A stretch of DNA of 64,000 bases, from the sequence record NC_048779.1; one strand, given 5' to 3'. The position numbers were made by a program, and so were the translations under genes. Each line of letters begins with the position of its first letter. Positions within the stretch are counted from its first letter, which is position 1. Positions 20,797 through 26,660 of this stretch are shown piece by piece. The notes under the pieces are model-generated. The model did not search any database. It saw only the letters and a list, made by a program, of their open reading frames with translations, and had not been told where the DNA came from.

Positions 20797-20824
20797 TATG
20801 TGGACTCCCGTAGGAGTCCACATA
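20797..20824 (-). terminator. Terminator hairpin with cUACGg loop
   Basis: tatgtggactcc-loop-ggagtccacata after the groEL stop. Confidence 0.75.
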
Positions 20825-20834
20825 TTAGTGATAA

Positions 20835-22394
20835 TTAGAAACGTACTTCAGATAGTCGAGAGTTAAGGATAAGAGTTTCTGAATCCATTAACGTAATCGC
20901 CATAGAAGTTGCGGCTTCTAACGCTGTGGTGGTCGCCAGTGCTGCGTCCCAAACTCCTAACTTACCCGGCTCTGCACCTTGTTCACCGGTTGCTAAGTTA
21001 GTGTAAATCATCCCATCCTTGTACTCAGTTAACATCAGATATTCAGATTGACTCTTTAGGACACTCCATAGCCCCTCTACGATTTCACACTCTGGATGCT
21101 TCGCTACTAGTTTCTTACCTGCTAGGATTAACGAGTAACCACAACCTTGTAAGACACCGTTCGACAACGCTGAGACACAAACACGCGCTACGTCTTCAAA
21201 ACGACCTATACGCTCACGGATATCAGATTCCGTAATACCACCGACATACAAAGTAACCGTCCCGCCTGACAAAATACGAAGACGATGTTCGATGATTTTA
21301 CCTAAGGCTGAATGACGTTGGTCCACATTCAGTTCTTTCAGTTCGTTTTGAACGTTAGTAATAGCTTTGTCCAAAGACGCTTTATGAGTCAATGTTGATC
21401 CAGCAAAGGAAACCGCTGCACTTGTAATACGCGCAATTGGGTAATCTTTCGGAACACGATACTCAGGATGGTCTTCCACCAATTGAGTGTGCATCTTCGC
21501 ATCTAGTACTGTTGCGATGTCGTTCATGATGGAAACACCCGAACTACCTGCCGCACGAAGTACAACTGCTTTATATGCCACTCGACCACACTTAGAGTTG
21601 AACGTTTTCAAAGTTTGTTCGGTTACGCTTTCGATACTACGTCCCATGATGAGGTAAGTCCCACCTTTTTCAACGTACTCTCGAGTGTACTCAATGAACT
21701 TAGAAACGGCTTCTTCGTTATCCAAACCATCAATACGACCTGATACTAAGATAGGGCGATAACTATCGTTTTCCATGAACACTTCTGGTGCACCGTTACC
21801 GAGCGTTGAAAACTCAGGAGAAGCAAATCCACCCGGCCAAGAACAACCATGACTTGCTTGCACTTGGTCTTGATCGTCGTTTGCTTCTTTGAATAACAAC
21901 TCAGGTAAATGTGGGTTATCACGGTAGATTTCCAACACTTTGTTGACGATGCGCTCGTCGTTGTTACTGGTCGTCATCATTACTTGACGTAATAAGTCAG
22001 ACTCAACATCTACTTTGGTGGATAGTTCATTGAGGTAACCAACGAGTTCTTGGGTGTATTCACGCAACAGCTTTTTGGTATTGAATGAAATGAGGTGGTT
22101 AAAACGACTGTAGATTTTGTTTAATAGGAACGCGGTGGTTGTCGTTCCATCACCACAGATTTTATCCGTACGCAAACAACATTCCGCCACCATAGTGGCA
22201 AACATGTCTTTAGCCGGGTCTTCAAAGCGCAATGCTTTTGCTACGGTCACCCCGTCTTTGGTTGGGAACGGAATACCGTTTTTATCACAAACCACAACTT
22301 TCCCTTCTGGTCCCATAGTAGAAGTAACGGCTGATGTCACTTCTATTACAGCTTCAGTACGGATTCGTTTGGTTTCTTTAGTTAGGTAAAGCAT
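20835..22394 (-). CDS. groEL: Phage-encoded GroEL-like chaperonin
   Basis: TMGPEG, TKDGVTVAK, GDGTTTT, LYVGG..E..I.ER..R.ED, D......ALE.A.S.A motifs; 519 aa, no GGM tail. Confidence 0.93.
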   Translation of the reverse strand: MLYLTKETKRIRTEAVIEVTSAVTSTMGPEGKVVVCDKNGIPFPTKDGVTVAKALRFEDPAKDMFATMVAECCLRTDKICGDGTTTTAFLLNKIYSRFNHLISFNTKKLLREYTQELVGYLNELSTKVDVESDLLRQVMMTTSNNDERIVNKVLEIYRDNPHLPELLFKEANDDQDQVQASHGCSWPGGFASPEFSTLGNGAPEVFMENDSYRPILVSGRIDGLDNEEAVSKFIEYTREYVEKGGTYLIMGRSIESVTEQTLKTFNSKCGRVAYKAVVLRAAGSSGVSIMNDIATVLDAKMHTQLVEDHPEYRVPKDYPIARITSAAVSFAGSTLTHKASLDKAITNVQNELKELNVDQRHSALGKIIEHRLRILSGGTVTLYVGGITESDIRERIGRFEDVARVCVSALSNGVLQGCGYSLILAGKKLVAKHPECEIVEGLWSVLKSQSEYLMLTEYKDGMIYTNLATGEQGAEPGKLGVWDAALATTTALEAATSMAITLMDSETLILNSRLSEVRF

Positions 22395-22466: not shown

Positions 22467-23612
22467 TTACAAACCGGAATAGTTTTTGATTTCCAGTTCT
22501 TGTTCAGTAATAGGTTGAGTCAAACTCATATCGTAAGGACGAAGGAGTTTAACGGTTGCAGGTTTCGTCCAATCTTGATCGGATTCAACGATGGTGTTTA
22601 ACATAGCTAATGTTTCTTTGTCCAAGATCAACTGATTAGCGTCTACTGTGAACGTCGTATTTTCCGCATTGATTTTGTGCGCCACGTACTCCGAATAGAT
22701 CATGTACGGTAACAACTCAGTCATGTATTCTTTCAGCGGAGAGAAGTCTCCGAGGGTTAAACGGGTGTGCAGGCGCTTACTCGGGATACCGTGACCATTA
22801 AACAAGTCTTGGATTAATTCAATGCGCTCCACGTTATCGTGAGTTTCTTTAGGGTATTTAAACCCTAACTCCACCAATCGTTCAAACGGCTCCTCTTTCA
22901 ACAAAGCGGCCAACAGCGCTGAAGCTTTCGGGTCTTTAAGTTGCAACGCACGTTCTTCTAAAGGAATCTCAGACGTCAGGAACGTCATCATGATCTGTTT
23001 TGGAATGTAAGAGTAACGACCTTCACTTAGACCTTCTTGGATAGGTGTTTCTGGGTCCGGTAGGTAATCCGGGTGGTGAAATAATATCGTCCCTGTGTTG
23101 GTTGGTTGTTTGAAAGCCAAACCGTGACAAGGACCAATGCCGCCTTCTTTACCCACGGTTTCTTCGCGAGCTTCAGTGATGCCCATTGCCGCCATACATT
23201 TATCGACAGTAAGGTGACGGTCCATCATCCCGTTGTCGAGGAAAGCACCTTTTAGACCTTCTTCGCCTTGCACGATCAAACCGGCTTCAAGGAAACGTTC
23301 TGTTGCCAACGCGCAACGCTCTTCGAACTTATACTGTTTGGTGAAAGTCAAGTCTTGTTCAAACTCTAGGTAATCGCGGTGATGTAACCCGGCGTCATGC
23401 AAAATGCTTAGATCACCTTGGTTGTTGACCAACCAATCCAGTTCCGCAAGTGCAGGTTTAATAGCAGGTAATTTAACTATGTTAGACCACTGTGGTAACA
23501 TCCCTTCTTGTGTTAAATCAAATTGGTAAGACCAACCGTACTTGACAACTTCACCTAGGGTGTGTTCACTAGAGTTAACAACGTGCTCTAAAGCTTTAAT
23601 AAAATGATTCAT
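22467..23612 (-). CDS. Thymidylate-synthase-fold protein, apparently catalytically inactive
   Basis: TS scaffold recognisable (YG.SYQFDL...P, AELDWL, GGIGP.HG, PD...P.Q....G, L.ER), but PCH reads PKQ and QRS.D/N are absent. Confidence 0.75.
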   Translation of the reverse strand: MNHFIKALEHVVNSSEHTLGEVVKYGWSYQFDLTQEGMLPQWSNIVKLPAIKPALAELDWLVNNQGDLSILHDAGLHHRDYLEFEQDLTFTKQYKFEERCALATERFLEAGLIVQGEEGLKGAFLDNGMMDRHLTVDKCMAAMGITEAREETVGKEGGIGPCHGLAFKQPTNTGTILFHHPDYLPDPETPIQEGLSEGRYSYIPKQIMMTFLTSEIPLEERALQLKDPKASALLAALLKEEPFERLVELGFKYPKETHDNVERIELIQDLFNGHGIPSKRLHTRLTLGDFSPLKEYMTELLPYMIYSEYVAHKINAENTTFTVDANQLILDKETLAMLNTIVESDQDWTKPATVKLLRPYDMSLTQPITEQELEIKNYSGL

Positions 23613-23614
23613 AA

Positions 23615-24259
23615 TTAATCCTTAATTCGGAGTTCTTGGCGTTTAAACATGTCAGAGAAATGTTCGTGTTTTAAACGCAGGTAATTGTTTCTATCGAAAG
23701 GTGTGTTAAAAACACCGGCGTCATGGAGAGAATCCGAAATCTCGTCTTCGTGACCCTCTAGGTTATAATCTGTGGAGTAAAATAGGTAATAACCAAACCC
23801 ACATATTTTGTGATGGGGAGACAACTGAGTATTTTTGAACTCACTGCCTTCATCAATGACTGTTTGGACTTTCTGAACGTATTCGTCTATGACTTTAGCG
23901 AACTGCTCAGGTGCTGTCATGTAGTTGGTCTTTTTAATCGTTTCTAAGAAAGAAAAGACTTCGACTTGTTCACCGGTATCAATACCAATGAAAAAGAATA
24001 ACTGCCAAGCTCGAGGTTCTAATAGTAAAGAGATGATGCCGGAGATCGCGGTCTCTCGATCTCTTCTTTTTGATAAACGTTTTAGTTTAGGGGACCAATC
24101 GATGGTATCTAGCTGATGAGCGTGACTACCAAAGAAGTAAAGGTGCTCGCTGATGTCTTTAACCGCCATCGCCATGGTGTGTCGGTTGGCTCGCTCTCGA
24201 CGGGATTGACGTAGTCTCAGTTGGACACCGCGACGTTCACCCTTATTTCTTTTACTCAT
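23615..24259 (-). CDS. Hypothetical protein with Arg-rich N-terminus
   Basis: 214 aa; KRNKGERRGVQLRLRQSRRERANR. Confidence 0.8.
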   Translation of the reverse strand: MSKRNKGERRGVQLRLRQSRRERANRHTMAMAVKDISEHLYFFGSHAHQLDTIDWSPKLKRLSKRRDRETAISGIISLLLEPRAWQLFFFIGIDTGEQVEVFSFLETIKKTNYMTAPEQFAKVIDEYVQKVQTVIDEGSEFKNTQLSPHHKICGFGYYLFYSTDYNLEGHEDEISDSLHDAGVFNTPFDRNNYLRLKHEHFSDMFKRQELRIKD

Positions 24260-24269
24260 GTTATTATTC

Positions 24270-24761
24270 CTAATTATTATTTACAGGTTCTGCGGATAGG
24301 TTGACGAAATAGAACGTTCGACCAATGTAGGGTTCTAACGCTTTAACTAATCGCTCACTATCTTTAACAGGGACGTCGTAAGCCACACTCATATGTGGGA
24401 TGTATTCAGGCCAACCGTGTTCATAACCAGCGGCCATCCACTTAAAGTGTTCTTCCACTAATTCTTCCGATTCTAAAGTCAACGCTACTGCTGACTGTAA
24501 CCCGTCTTTAACTTCACCCATTAGTTCCACACCGATCACCTTCGCTTCGTACAAACGGTTTTTATCGATGTCTATGTCAAGGGTGTTATCTATCAACTCT
24601 TTGTCGTAAGCGACCGTAACGTGAAAGTCACCATCGTCAATAGGCTTGATCCCCTGATTAGCAACTAACTCTCTTAAACGACCACACTGAAAATAAGCCA
24701 GATCAACGGAGACATAACCTTTATCCACTTTACTTTTGGTTGAGTCTGAATTGAGTTTCAT
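24270..24761 (-). CDS. 2H phosphoesterase, Acb1 (T4 gp57B)-like anti-CBASS nuclease candidate
   Basis: Two H-x-T/S motifs (FHVTVAY, PHMSVAY); N-terminal GYV, L.L.SE.L...H...A.G..H....Y.PH and C-terminal EP match T4 gp57B as I recall it. Confidence 0.75.
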   Translation of the reverse strand: MKLNSDSTKSKVDKGYVSVDLAYFQCGRLRELVANQGIKPIDDGDFHVTVAYDKELIDNTLDIDIDKNRLYEAKVIGVELMGEVKDGLQSAVALTLESEELVEEHFKWMAAGYEHGWPEYIPHMSVAYDVPVKDSERLVKALEPYIGRTFYFVNLSAEPVNNN

Positions 24762-24800: not shown

Positions 24801-24827
24801 AAAGAGAGGGGATCAACCCTCTACTTT
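24801..24827 (-). terminator. Hairpin followed by T-run
   Basis: aaagagaggg-gatcaa-ccctctacttt; minus strand continues TTTATTTTT. Confidence 0.55.
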
Positions 24828-25691: not shown

Positions 25692-26660
25692 TCATACATA
25701 GGACTCGACAGTTAAGTTTGATTGTTTGGAATTAAGTACTTCGTATTTGTATTCCAAATAAGTTTGCTTACGATAATAAGTGATGATGTTACGTATGGCT
25801 TGTGGTGGTAAGCCAATCACCTTGGCTATTGTTTCAATACGTATCTCCCAGTCGGTAATATGTTGTTTTATAACATCCAGCCACTCTTCACCTAGGAGTT
25901 CGTCATATCCGTTTTTACGGCGACGTGGAACACCCTTCACCTGCTTACCCGCCCAAGAACGGAAAGTGATTCCGTAATGGACTTTATGAATATAATCTAC
26001 GTTATGGGAAGGTAGGTTATTCTTTAAGAAGTACTCCTTAGGTGTCATCTTACTTTCTAAGAAATCCTTCCTAATACATGAAATGCGGGTAAAGGAGATA
26101 AACTCATAGGGGGTTTCCGGACCGTTGTGAGCATACCAAATTCTGTAAAACCAAGTGTGACTGCATTTAAAGAAATCCAGAAGATCCTCTTTAACTTTGA
26201 CCTTCCCCTTAGCGCGTTGTATGATTCGTATCATCTCAAACGCGATATACTCGTCAACGTTGTCAAATTCACTTTCTAGATAATCCTTAGAAAGGCCAAG
26301 TGAATGTAAATACTCAATCTCTGGGAAAGAGAACTCAAACTTATCACGGAAATAATCAAAGAAACTGTGCTTGTACTTAAAGCCCATTTGTGCTTGTAAA
26401 GTACTCACGTCAAAACTGGGATCTTTAAGCTCATTAATTATCGACAATTTCCTTTGTTCCGAAAACCATTCCGCAGGAGCTAAATCGGTTACTGAAGAAA
26501 TTAATTTAGAGATAGTTCTTTCGGGCTCACCTAAATGCTTGACCAAATGTTTCAGTGTCATTCTAAAGAGTTTGCCTTTGACTTCTTGTTTTATTTTTAC
26601 CCATAACTCTTTTTCTTCATTAGACAAAAATCTTAGATTTTCTTCTTTATTTTGTTTCAT
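25692..26660 (-). CDS. Protein with tandem AraC/XylS-type HTH domains
   Basis: TLKHLVKHLGEPERTISKLI....APAEW..QR.....L......V......GF.....F..YF...F; a second degenerate copy (CSHTWFYRI....GPETPYEF...R) and a third partial copy (IETIAKVIGL). Confidence 0.7.
   Translation of the reverse strand: MKQNKEENLRFLSNEEKELWVKIKQEVKGKLFRMTLKHLVKHLGEPERTISKLISSVTDLAPAEWFSEQRKLSIINELKDPSFDVSTLQAQMGFKYKHSFFDYFRDKFEFSFPEIEYLHSLGLSKDYLESEFDNVDEYIAFEMIRIIQRAKGKVKVKEDLLDFFKCSHTWFYRIWYAHNGPETPYEFISFTRISCIRKDFLESKMTPKEYFLKNNLPSHNVDYIHKVHYGITFRSWAGKQVKGVPRRRKNGYDELLGEEWLDVIKQHITDWEIRIETIAKVIGLPPQAIRNIITYYRKQTYLEYKYEVLNSKQSNLTVESYV

Follow-up and report, generated by a model that had tools for sequence, protein, structure and literature searches.

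Judged from its sequences, the protein family of gp023 from Vibrio phage USC-1 is a branch of the thymidylate synthase (TS) superfamily that has lost the TS mechanism, has a rebuilt pocket, and is invariably accompanied by gp024, the product of the adjacent gene. The TS superfamily is among the most thoroughly studied enzyme families. The DNA analyzed here, referred to below as the window, is a stretch of 64 kb that corresponds to bases 1–64000 of the USC-1 genome (NC_048779.1/MK905543.1; 238,099 bp; Gorgonvirinae, Aphroditevirus). The genome record carries annotations for a nuclear shell protein, a PhuZ tubulin, and multiple split RNA polymerase subunits, and these identify USC-1 as a nucleus-forming (chimallivirus-type) jumbo phage. 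The gene of interest, HWC35_gp023, is labeled "hypothetical protein" in NC_048779.1. A preliminary description, made from the sequence of the window, had reported it as an intact, full-length open reading frame (ORF) for a ThyA-like protein with its catalytic residues replaced. The ORF is intact and encodes 381 residues, and all of the coordinates in that description are correct.

Homology of gp023 to the Long ThyAs of Jumbo Phages

The relationship of gp023 to ThyA was missed by every direct sequence search. No match to the Pfam family PF00303 (Thymidylat_synt) was obtained at E ≤ 10, no match was found in NCBIfam, the ThyA models included, and no match was returned by phmmer against all PDB chains. 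A BLASTP comparison with gp177, the ThyA of the same phage, provided an E value of 2.5. The PHROG assignment of gp023 is phrog_26020, a family of unknown function, and a profile of the gp023 family places ThyA at the top of the PDB matches but with an E value of 0.31. The connection surfaced only through tblastn against 50,697 phage genomes, where the matches outside the gp023 family are the "thymidylate synthase" genes of the Serratia phages Yubaba and Sureiya (E 1e-5 to 2e-5). Because the Pfam, NCBIfam, and PHROG models of ThyA do not detect the gp023 family, its members are annotated as hypothetical everywhere.

The ThyA of Yubaba (396 aa, UQT03309.1) is genuine. It matches Pfam at 2.8e-60 and the E. 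coli ThyA structures at 3e-42, and the motifs DRTGTG, SRR, PCH, and RS.D are visible in its sequence. The BLASTP alignment of gp023 with this protein (E 3e-12, residues 29–226) places IPKQ on TPCH and GIGPCHG on GDLGPIYG, and the insertion YLPDP...EIP.ER is matched residue for residue. When the profile of the 13-member gp023 family (alignment A2) was compared with that of 20 long ThyAs (alignment A3) using hhalign, a probability of 99.2% and an E value of 8.3e-20 were obtained over 339 columns (query 4–380, template 15–388). In the reverse direction, the Yubaba ThyA matches phrog_26020 at 1.2e-7 through the insertion region. Insertions 1 and 2 of the long jumbo-phage ThyAs are both present in gp023 and are aligned without large gaps (YLPDP...G at residues 183–198 and PLEER at residues 217–221). 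These E values, and the fact that hhalign and MAFFT agree as independent aligners, put the homology far beyond chance. The jumbo-phage-type insertions of the preliminary description are thus confirmed, and its alignment to ThyA along the full length of the protein holds by way of the long ThyAs but not by direct comparison with Pfam, NCBIfam, the PDB, or gp177.

An exhaustive hidden Markov model search of 1.84 billion cluster representatives with the gp023 family returned only nine clusters (50% identity), all of them full-length members of the family, and no intermediates between the family and ThyA. No further members came from a word-indexed search with the 13-sequence profile, and a scan of viral contigs returned the known isolates. 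The family is known from nine isolates and a few metagenomic contigs, all within a single clade of jumbo phages of Vibrio and Photobacterium. Two of the metagenomic members (P0009 and P0011) have in common an acidic C-terminal extension of ~40 residues, rich in Pro, Glu, and Val (A2 columns ~409–450), which is absent from the isolates.

The AlphaFold2 model of gp023, calculated from a combined multiple sequence alignment (MSA A4) that includes ThyAs, has the α/β fold of thymidylate synthase. The model has a mean predicted local distance difference test score (pLDDT) of 91.6 and a predicted template modeling (TM) score of 0.85. When it was compared with the PDB using Foldseek, the best 50 matches were all ThyA or ThyA-derived chains (E ~5e-9). 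The structural comparison with E. coli ThyA that had been proposed in the preliminary description yields an E value of ~4e-8 and a TM-score of 0.71–0.72, normalized to the E. coli enzyme. In the BFVD the top match is the independently predicted model of the homologue from Vibrio phage 2 TSL-2019 (TM-score 0.90), followed by ThyAs of the jumbo phages 201phi2-1, Aeromonas D3, Yoloswag, and RisingSun.

Loss of the Thymidylate Synthase Machinery

The 13 members of the gp023 family were mapped onto ThyA using hhalign and MAFFT, which agree at every key column. The residue numbers of E. coli ThyA were transferred through a HMMER alignment of the Yubaba ThyA with the E. coli ThyA chain and from a 2026 paper (PMC13326640), in which 12 residues are listed within 6 Å of C5 of deoxyuridine monophosphate (dUMP) in the E. 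coli enzyme. None of these 12 residues is kept. At every one of them the most common residue in the gp023 family differs from that of the long ThyAs.

The catalytic P-C-H aligns with P204-K205-Q206 of gp023 by BLASTP, hhalign, and MAFFT. The nucleophile Cys146 is replaced by Lys (10/13) or Asn (3/13), and His147 by Gln (12/13). The DRT segment, which contains Arg21, and a 22-residue segment that contains Arg126 and Arg127 are deleted in all 13 members. The stretch L287–L293 (LGDFSPL) falls on the M/Q-R-S-N-D-W-V segment of the ThyAs; the position of Arg166 is occupied by Gly, Ser, Thr, Met, or Glu, and those of Ser167 and Asp169 are variable. Asn177 is replaced by Glu299 in 13/13 members, and Gly173 by Glu or Asp, such that position 295 is always acidic. 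The remaining replacements are Trp80 by Arg79, Tyr94 by His163, Leu143 by Tyr202, His207 by a hydrophobic residue, and Tyr209 by Asp331 (10/13). The C-terminal tail, I-x-F-P-I, is missing from 10–11 of the 13 members, gp023 included.

The long ThyAs have an invariant set (32/32 sequences, P0013 numbering) composed of R28, E65, W87, Y161, R193, R194, C226, H227, R292, S293, D295, N303, H333, and Y335. Of the catalytic residues in this set, the gp023 family keeps only the equivalent of E65. This residue is Glu58 of the E. coli enzyme and E57 of gp023. With the Cys nucleophile, the four-Arg clamp, Ser167, Asp169, Asn177, His207, Tyr209, and the C-terminal tail that closes over the folate all lost, gp023 should be unable to bind dUMP in the manner of ThyA or to methylate it.

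The substitutions at the catalytic P-C-H and in the QRS.D...N segment, and the absence of the RR and DRTG motifs, had been noted in the preliminary description, and each is found again here; no canonical set of Cys, Arg, and Asn is present, since these residues are either replaced or deleted. The same description had treated a second P-C-H (P161-C162-H163, positions 23124–23132) as a decoy for automatic annotation. This tripeptide does lie on the GP.YG loop as a nonconserved look-alike, but RefSeq was not misled by it, as the "hypothetical" label attests. It was rejected as a relocated active site because its Cys is found in only 2 of the 13 members. Lys205 was likewise rejected as a universal replacement nucleophile, with Asn found at this position in 3/13 members.

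Selection and the Re-Lined Pocket

gp023 is under strong purifying selection. The ratio of nonsynonymous to synonymous substitution rates (dN/dS), calculated by the method of Nei and Gojobori, is 0.067 for gp023 of USC-1 and its homologue in Aphrodite1 (dS 0.20), and 0.036 for the homologues of PDCC-1 and 2 TSL-2019. All family members are intact and full-length, with divergence down to 26% identity. The ratios of 0.04–0.07 and the intact homologues rule out simple decay of the gene. The relaxed selection in relatives that would have counted against the preliminary description is thus not seen.

The share of the most common residue averages 0.69 in the 12 columns of the dUMP shell versus 0.47 for all columns (permutation P = 0.001). 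For a wider set of 16 columns from the former pocket the share is 0.675 versus 0.47 (P = 0.0006). The pocket of gp023 was thus rebuilt and then fixed, given that 0/12 of the shell residues are kept and yet the shell columns are more conserved than the family average. The new conserved set is mostly charged and consists of E57, H78, R79, D80, H163, Y202, K/N205, Q206, E/D295, E299, and D331. The phosphate-binding side of the pocket is, by contrast, deleted or variable. Insertion 1 is poorly conserved among the long ThyAs, but N127, T135, and C139 within it are invariant in the gp023 family. C139 (codon 23196–23198) is the only Cys that is conserved in the family.

The identity of gp023 across phages is 30–48%. 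In the same comparisons the values are 83–92% for thymidine kinase (TK), 75–98% for RNase H, 58–99% for GroEL, 42–94% for gp024, and 90–98% for gp177. The fast divergence of gp023 relative to TK, RNase H, and ThyA is as expected for a protein released from its ancestral enzymatic constraint.

The Second ThyA and the Probable Ancestral Locus

A second intact thyA elsewhere in the genome, for which a search had been suggested in the preliminary description, is present as gp177 (199572–200480 of NC_048779.1). This conventional ThyA matches Pfam at 3.5e-52, NCBIfam NF002498 at 1.3e-111, and the ThyAs of the PDB at 7e-37. It is of a different subtype from the long jumbo-phage ThyA, with a BLASTP E value of 0.003 between them. 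A ThyA of the gp177 type, at 90–98% identity, is found in 9/9 distinct phages that carry a gp023 homologue (USC-1, 5 TSL-2019, Aphrodite1, 2 TSL-2019, PDCC-1, phiKT1019, phiKT1028, pTD1, and VP4B). Such identity amid far more diverged genes suggests either very strong constraint or recent exchange. At the catalytic Pro, gp177 reads P-C-M and not P-C-H. Its closest relatives outside of the jumbo phages are the ThyAs of ~76-kb Vibrio siphophages (55–57%). An HD-domain phosphohydrolase, gp178, follows gp177 (pair at 199572–201270; L006:573–2271), and the same pair is annotated in phiKT1019.

When the long ThyA was searched within the USC-1 genome, the best match was gp023 (1.2e-9), whereas gp177 was matched only at 1.3. 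In the most divergent contig of the family (L019), the gp023 homologue overlaps a gene for dihydrofolate reductase (DHFR) by 11 nt (DHFR region L019:2048–2785), and the genes for GroEL and TK follow. This DHFR is 36% identical (E 4e-17) to the one encoded near the genuine long ThyA in Yubaba. These two results, the best match of the long ThyA and the DHFR overlap, make the position of gp023 look like the ancestral thyA(-DHFR) locus. No DHFR was found in the whole USC-1 genome (best tblastn E value of 1.0), which encodes ThyA, thymidine kinase, and thymidylate kinase. The old copy of ThyA was probably released from the synthesis of deoxythymidine monophosphate (dTMP) after the lineage had come to carry a second ThyA, with gp177 taking over.

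The Partner Gene gp024

A gp024 homologue lies upstream of every member of the gp023 family that was examined (E 1e-41 to 1e-57), and the distribution of gp024 is exactly the same nine phages as that of gp023. The spacing between gp024 and gp023 is −4 nt in one lineage, 2 nt in another, and 9 nt in a third. No significant family match for gp024 was obtained in Pfam, NCBIfam, PADLOC, or a profile search of the PDB, and in PHROG it matches families of unknown function only. Their constant pairing suggests that gp023 and gp024 act together.

Gene Neighborhood

The features of the gp023 locus are collected in Table 1. The order of the genes for the Acb1-like protein, gp024, gp023, GroEL, and, further along, TK is kept in six isolates and three metagenomic contigs. 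The genes gp025-gp024-gp023-gp022 are bracketed by two terminator-like hairpins and may constitute one putative transcription unit. A scan for σ70-like promoters was uninformative, because matches are rarer in the phage DNA than in shuffled sequence and because these phages use their own RNA polymerases.

Table 1. Coordinates of gp023, Its Segments, and the Adjacent Features in the Window
Feature	Positions	Strand	Basis
gp023; 381-aa ThyA-fold protein lacking the catalytic and substrate-binding residues of ThyA	22467–23612	−	hhalign, AlphaFold2, Foldseek, dN/dS
N-terminal core, residues 1–86; DRT segment (E. coli R21 region) deleted; E57 (= E58) kept; H78-R79-D80 in place of F-W-N (E. coli I79-W80-D81)	23355–23612	−	alignment
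Insertion 1, residues 87–156; same site as insertion 1 of the long ThyAs; contains the invariant N127, T135, and C139	23145–23354	−	alignment
Loop G157–G164, GGIGPCHG; equivalent to the GxLGPxYG loop; H163 in place of Tyr94; P-C-H look-alike	23121–23144	−	alignment
Residues 178–181; site of the missing ~22-residue Arg126/Arg127 segment	23070–23081	−	alignment
Insertion 2a, residues 183–203, YLPDP...; common to the long ThyAs; P185 invariant in both families	23004–23066	−	alignment
P204-K205-Q206, on the catalytic P-C-H	22995–23003	−	BLASTP, hhalign, MAFFT
Insertion 2b, residues 216–278, IPLEER...; common to the long ThyAs; R221 invariant in both families; least conserved segment of the family	22779–22967	−	alignment
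Residues 287–299; formerly R166-S167-x-D169...G173...N177, now L-G-D-F-S...E295...E299	22716–22754	−	alignment
gp024; 214 aa, no family match, basic N-terminus, directly upstream of gp023 (2-nt gap)	23615–24259	−	synteny and distribution
gp025; Acb1-family 2H phosphoesterase (anti-CBASS family), first gene of the putative unit	24270–24761	−	Pfam PF23474, synteny
gp022; GroEL-like chaperonin, directly downstream of gp023 (72-nt gap)	20835–22394	−	Pfam/PHROG, synteny
Terminator-like hairpin marking the start of the putative unit, upstream of gp025	24805–24822	−	consensus scan only
Terminator-like hairpin, 12-bp stem, after the GroEL gene; end boundary of the putative unit	20797–20824	−	consensus scan only

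The RefSeq label of gp025 is "RNA ligase". Its sequence matches the Acb1 family of Pfam (PF23474) with 57.8 bits against a cutoff of 27, and the match to 2'-5' RNA ligase is weak. An Acb1-family match is found at the position of gp025 in three metagenomic relatives (L016–L018), and a gp025 homologue is found there by tblastn in six isolate genomes. These matches make gp025 a probable cyclic-nucleotide phosphodiesterase and not a ligase. The chaperonin gp022 (519 aa) matches Cpn60_TCP1 of Pfam over only the N-terminal ~130 residues (E 7.6e-21), and the PHROG chaperonin model matches over the full length. It is a divergent phage chaperonin whose gene always lies downstream of the gp024-gp023 pair. 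The GroEL gene directly follows the gp023 homologue in all lineages except for L019, where the DHFR gene lies between the two.

Several other features of these genomes were recorded. gp028 (25692–26660, minus strand) contains an AraC-type HTH_18 domain with an E value of 3e-7, which is below the cutoff of Pfam, and it is among the fastest-evolving genes of the neighborhood, with 24–72% identity across relatives. In phiKT1019 a gene for an HNH homing endonuclease (L014:9604–10839) is found between the small ORFs on the GroEL side and the gene for thymidine kinase; it has no counterpart at this place in USC-1. Outside of the window, the RefSeq annotations at 115556–117088 and 135593–137659 of NC_048779.1 are odd. 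They comprise a "DNA helicase" with the note "terminase large subunit @ intein-containing" and a "nuclear shell protein" with a note on GGDEF/EAL/PAS domains, and they are apparently carried-over annotation artifacts.

Proposed Function and Alternatives

The loss of the TS residues, the fully re-lined pocket, the constant pairing with gp024, and the strong purifying selection argue that gp023 was repurposed. We propose, with a probability of about 50%, that gp023 no longer has TS activity and serves as a binding module, working with gp024 and using the new pocket and/or insertion 1. The protein would have descended from the long, two-insertion ThyA of the nucleus-forming jumbo phages and would still occupy the old locus of that gene. 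In the Vibrio/Photobacterium clade the conventional gp177 would have taken over the synthesis of dTMP. The old copy would then have lost the nucleophile, the phosphate clamp, and the contacts to the base and the cofactor, with the fold and both insertions kept. The former pocket would have been re-lined with the conserved, mostly charged set, and insertion 1 would have gained the invariant motif that includes C139. The present protein may bind a small ligand or a partner through the rebuilt pocket and/or insertion 1. The most probable partner would be gp024, which is often translationally coupled to it, and gp023 would be coexpressed with the genes for the Acb1-like protein and the phage chaperonin.

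Several points weigh against this proposal. The ligand and the partner of gp023 are both putative. The conserved, charged lining of the pocket and the invariant Cys fit a new enzyme equally well, and these charges might alternatively be paired in internal salt bridges, plugging the old cavity. The pairing with gp024 says nothing of chemistry, since gp024 has no recognizable family. The cotranscription of gp025-gp024-gp023-gp022 is deduced solely from the consensus scan for terminators. The fold is partly imposed by the alignment, since the MSA of the high-confidence model contained ThyAs; an MSA of five sequences from the family only gave an unusable model with a pLDDT of 46.5.

The preliminary description had called gp023 a repurposed, noncatalytic protein. 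The repurposing stands, in that gp023 appears incapable of the known chemistry of ThyA or of the hydroxymethylases and has been retained by selection, but the term noncatalytic is too strong for a protein with a re-lined, conserved pocket and an invariant C139. It had also listed a heterodimeric regulator of a phage or host ThyA among the possible roles. For the phage's own ThyA this role is less likely, and a gp023-gp177 heterodimer was rejected, because gp177 belongs to a different ThyA subtype and matches gp023 by BLASTP with an E value of 2.5. The other roles that it named, a nucleotide or folate sensor, an RNA binder, and a decoy for defense systems, are hypothetical. The pairing with gp024, the position at the probable ancestral locus, and the confinement of the family to one phage clade are additions to that description.

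It is possible, but on balance doubtful, that gp023 is instead a new enzyme in which the TS fold was retooled for chemistry that is independent of Cys146 or based on C139. Its rebuilt polar pocket, composed of His, His, Arg, Asp, Glu, Glu, Lys, and Tyr, would act on a substrate that is not clamped by its 5'-phosphate, for example a base or nucleoside, a compound resembling folate, or a polynucleotide. Such an enzyme would account for former active-site columns that are significantly more conserved than the rest and carry entirely new residues, and for the invariance of C139, N127, and T135 in insertion 1. Glu299 is invariant at the position of Asn177, which determines base specificity and where an acidic residue marks cytosine-specific relatives (PMC13326640). 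Unexpected chemistry has evolved in the superfamily before, as in the 5-hydroxy-dCMP (deoxycytidine monophosphate) synthases, and the overlap with DHFR in L019 could mean that a link to folate persists. No DHFR, however, is found in USC-1 and its close relatives. The position of the old nucleophile is not invariant (K 10/13, N 3/13), no known catalytic motif is recognizable in gp023, and its sequence changes far more quickly than those of the bona fide nucleotide enzymes that these genomes encode. Moreover, every branch of the superfamily that PMC13326640 lists as experimentally verified, namely ThyA, the dCMP and cytidine monophosphate (CMP) hydroxymethylases, and the 5-hydroxy-dCMP synthases, keeps the equivalent of Cys146.

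A purely structural role for gp023 is improbable. The TS fold, possibly as a dimer, would be kept as a structural or assembly component, for example as part of a complex for nucleotide metabolism or in association with the neighboring phage chaperonin, as its client or cofactor, and salt bridges would fill the obsolete cavity. The bulkier or charged replacements (Gly173 to Glu/Asp, Leu143 to Tyr, Trp80 to Arg, and Asn177 to Glu) could indeed pair and fill the cavity, the adjacency to GroEL is conserved in all lineages, and the substitution rate of gp023 is typical of nonenzymatic phage proteins. The plugging of the cavity by salt bridges, however, explains neither the highest conservation of the former pocket columns nor the invariant motif of insertion 1. 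The retention of the dimer is uncertain, because in ThyA the deleted 22-residue segment extends across the dimer interface, and any such complex is hypothetical.

A role in anti-defense, in which gp023 would sequester a nucleotide-derived immune signal or mimic ThyA for a host factor, is very unlikely. The conserved neighborhood includes an Acb1-family gene two genes away that is probably cotranscribed, and the fast sequence evolution under purifying selection and the narrow, clade-specific distribution of gp023 are compatible with such a role. The argument is, however, purely contextual. gp023 has no similarity to known sponge or anti-defense families and no PADLOC match, it is much larger than the known sponges, and the neighborhood is not a dedicated island, because it also contains replication genes (RNase H, ligase, and TK).

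Residual TS or hydroxymethylase activity from an unrecognized active site (suggested by the TS fold and by the DHFR that adjoins one family member) and decay of a paralogue made redundant by gp177 are both effectively refuted: the sequences of all 13 members lack the nucleophile, the phosphate clamp, Ser167, Asp169, Asn177, His207, and Tyr209 and a conventional ThyA is always present, while the dN/dS values and the intact state of even the most divergent members speak against decay.

A bolder reading can be offered only tentatively. gp023 and gp024 may constitute an undescribed two-protein module in which the new, charged pocket of a TS fold without nucleophile and phosphate clamp either catalyzes Cys146-independent chemistry or binds a nucleotide- or folate-related molecule, such as a host immune signal in view of the Acb1 neighbor. 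If this were true, the module would be the first case of a functional TS-superfamily branch that dispenses with the canonical covalent-Cys mechanism.

A TS fold that is kept under strong selection with all 12 residues of the substrate shell replaced represents an undescribed evolutionary route within the literature and databases searched. It is a clean natural example of what becomes of an enzyme gene when its activity is available from a second copy. The scope is narrow, as the family is confined to one phage clade. In practice, a conserved gene pair of Vibrio jumbo phages relevant to aquaculture gains an annotation as TS-fold, TS-inactive, and gp024-associated, and the pocket and the partner are flagged for direct structural work.

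Comparison with Known Systems

No description of the gp023 family or of any Cys-less TS-fold protein was found in the literature searches, and the phiKT1019 paper is silent on the gene. The closest known relatives are the long (~390 aa) ThyAs of nucleus-forming and other jumbo phages, including those of Yubaba (UQT03309.1), Pseudomonas phage OBP, Erwinia phage AH04, and Kosakonia phage Kc263. gp023 has the same predicted fold, is collinear with them over 339 columns, and carries insertions in the small domain and flanking the catalytic strand (YLPDP and EIP.ER). G157, G160, G164, P185, and R221 are common to both groups, with full invariance among the relatives of gp023 and conservation of at least 90% among the long ThyAs. 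Both groups also have E57, W60, and Y303 as nearly invariant residues, and one member of the gp023 family (L019) has a DHFR neighbor, as does the long ThyA of Yubaba. Unlike the long ThyAs, to which it is 13–19% identical, gp023 has none of the 12 dUMP-shell residues, the Arg21 and Arg126/127 segments are deleted, and the tail is absent. The gp023 family is also missed by the ThyA models of Pfam, NCBIfam, and PHROG, and it has a new invariant motif in insertion 1.

With the conventional ThyAs (E. coli, PDB 1aob/2tsc; gp177), gp023 has in common the core α/β fold of TS, as modeled, and the equivalent of Glu58, E57. It differs from them in having no significant sequence similarity, two large insertions, the 22-residue deletion, and replaced catalytic and substrate residues.

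The branches of the superfamily with alternative chemistry are represented by the T4 gp42 dCMP hydroxymethylase, the MilA CMP hydroxymethylase, and the 5-hydroxy-dCMP synthases RB69 gp48 and DLP3 gp80 (PMC13326640). The signatures of these enzymes are Cys146, Asp at the position of Asn177, and Asp or Glu at that of Leu143, with Asn at the position of Asp169 for the 5-hydroxy-dCMP synthases (PMC13326640). gp023 resembles them as a phage-encoded, diverged TS fold with an acidic residue at the position of Asn177 (Glu299 in place of their Asp). The L143D/E and D169N signatures are absent, with Tyr202 at the former position and a variable residue 291 at the latter. These enzymes keep the Cys and act on 5'-mononucleotides, whereas gp023 has neither the Cys nor the phosphate clamp.

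As in other pseudoenzymes, gp023 is homologous to an enzyme, its catalytic residues are missing, it is under purifying selection, and an active counterpart is present. Unlike in typical pseudoenzymes, the pocket has been fixed anew and not merely relaxed, and its polar lining and the invariant C139 may serve new chemistry. With the fold and insertions shared and the catalytic set absent, gp023 is by its descent and fold a member of the TS superfamily, and functionally it stands outside of ThyA and the known catalytic offshoots.

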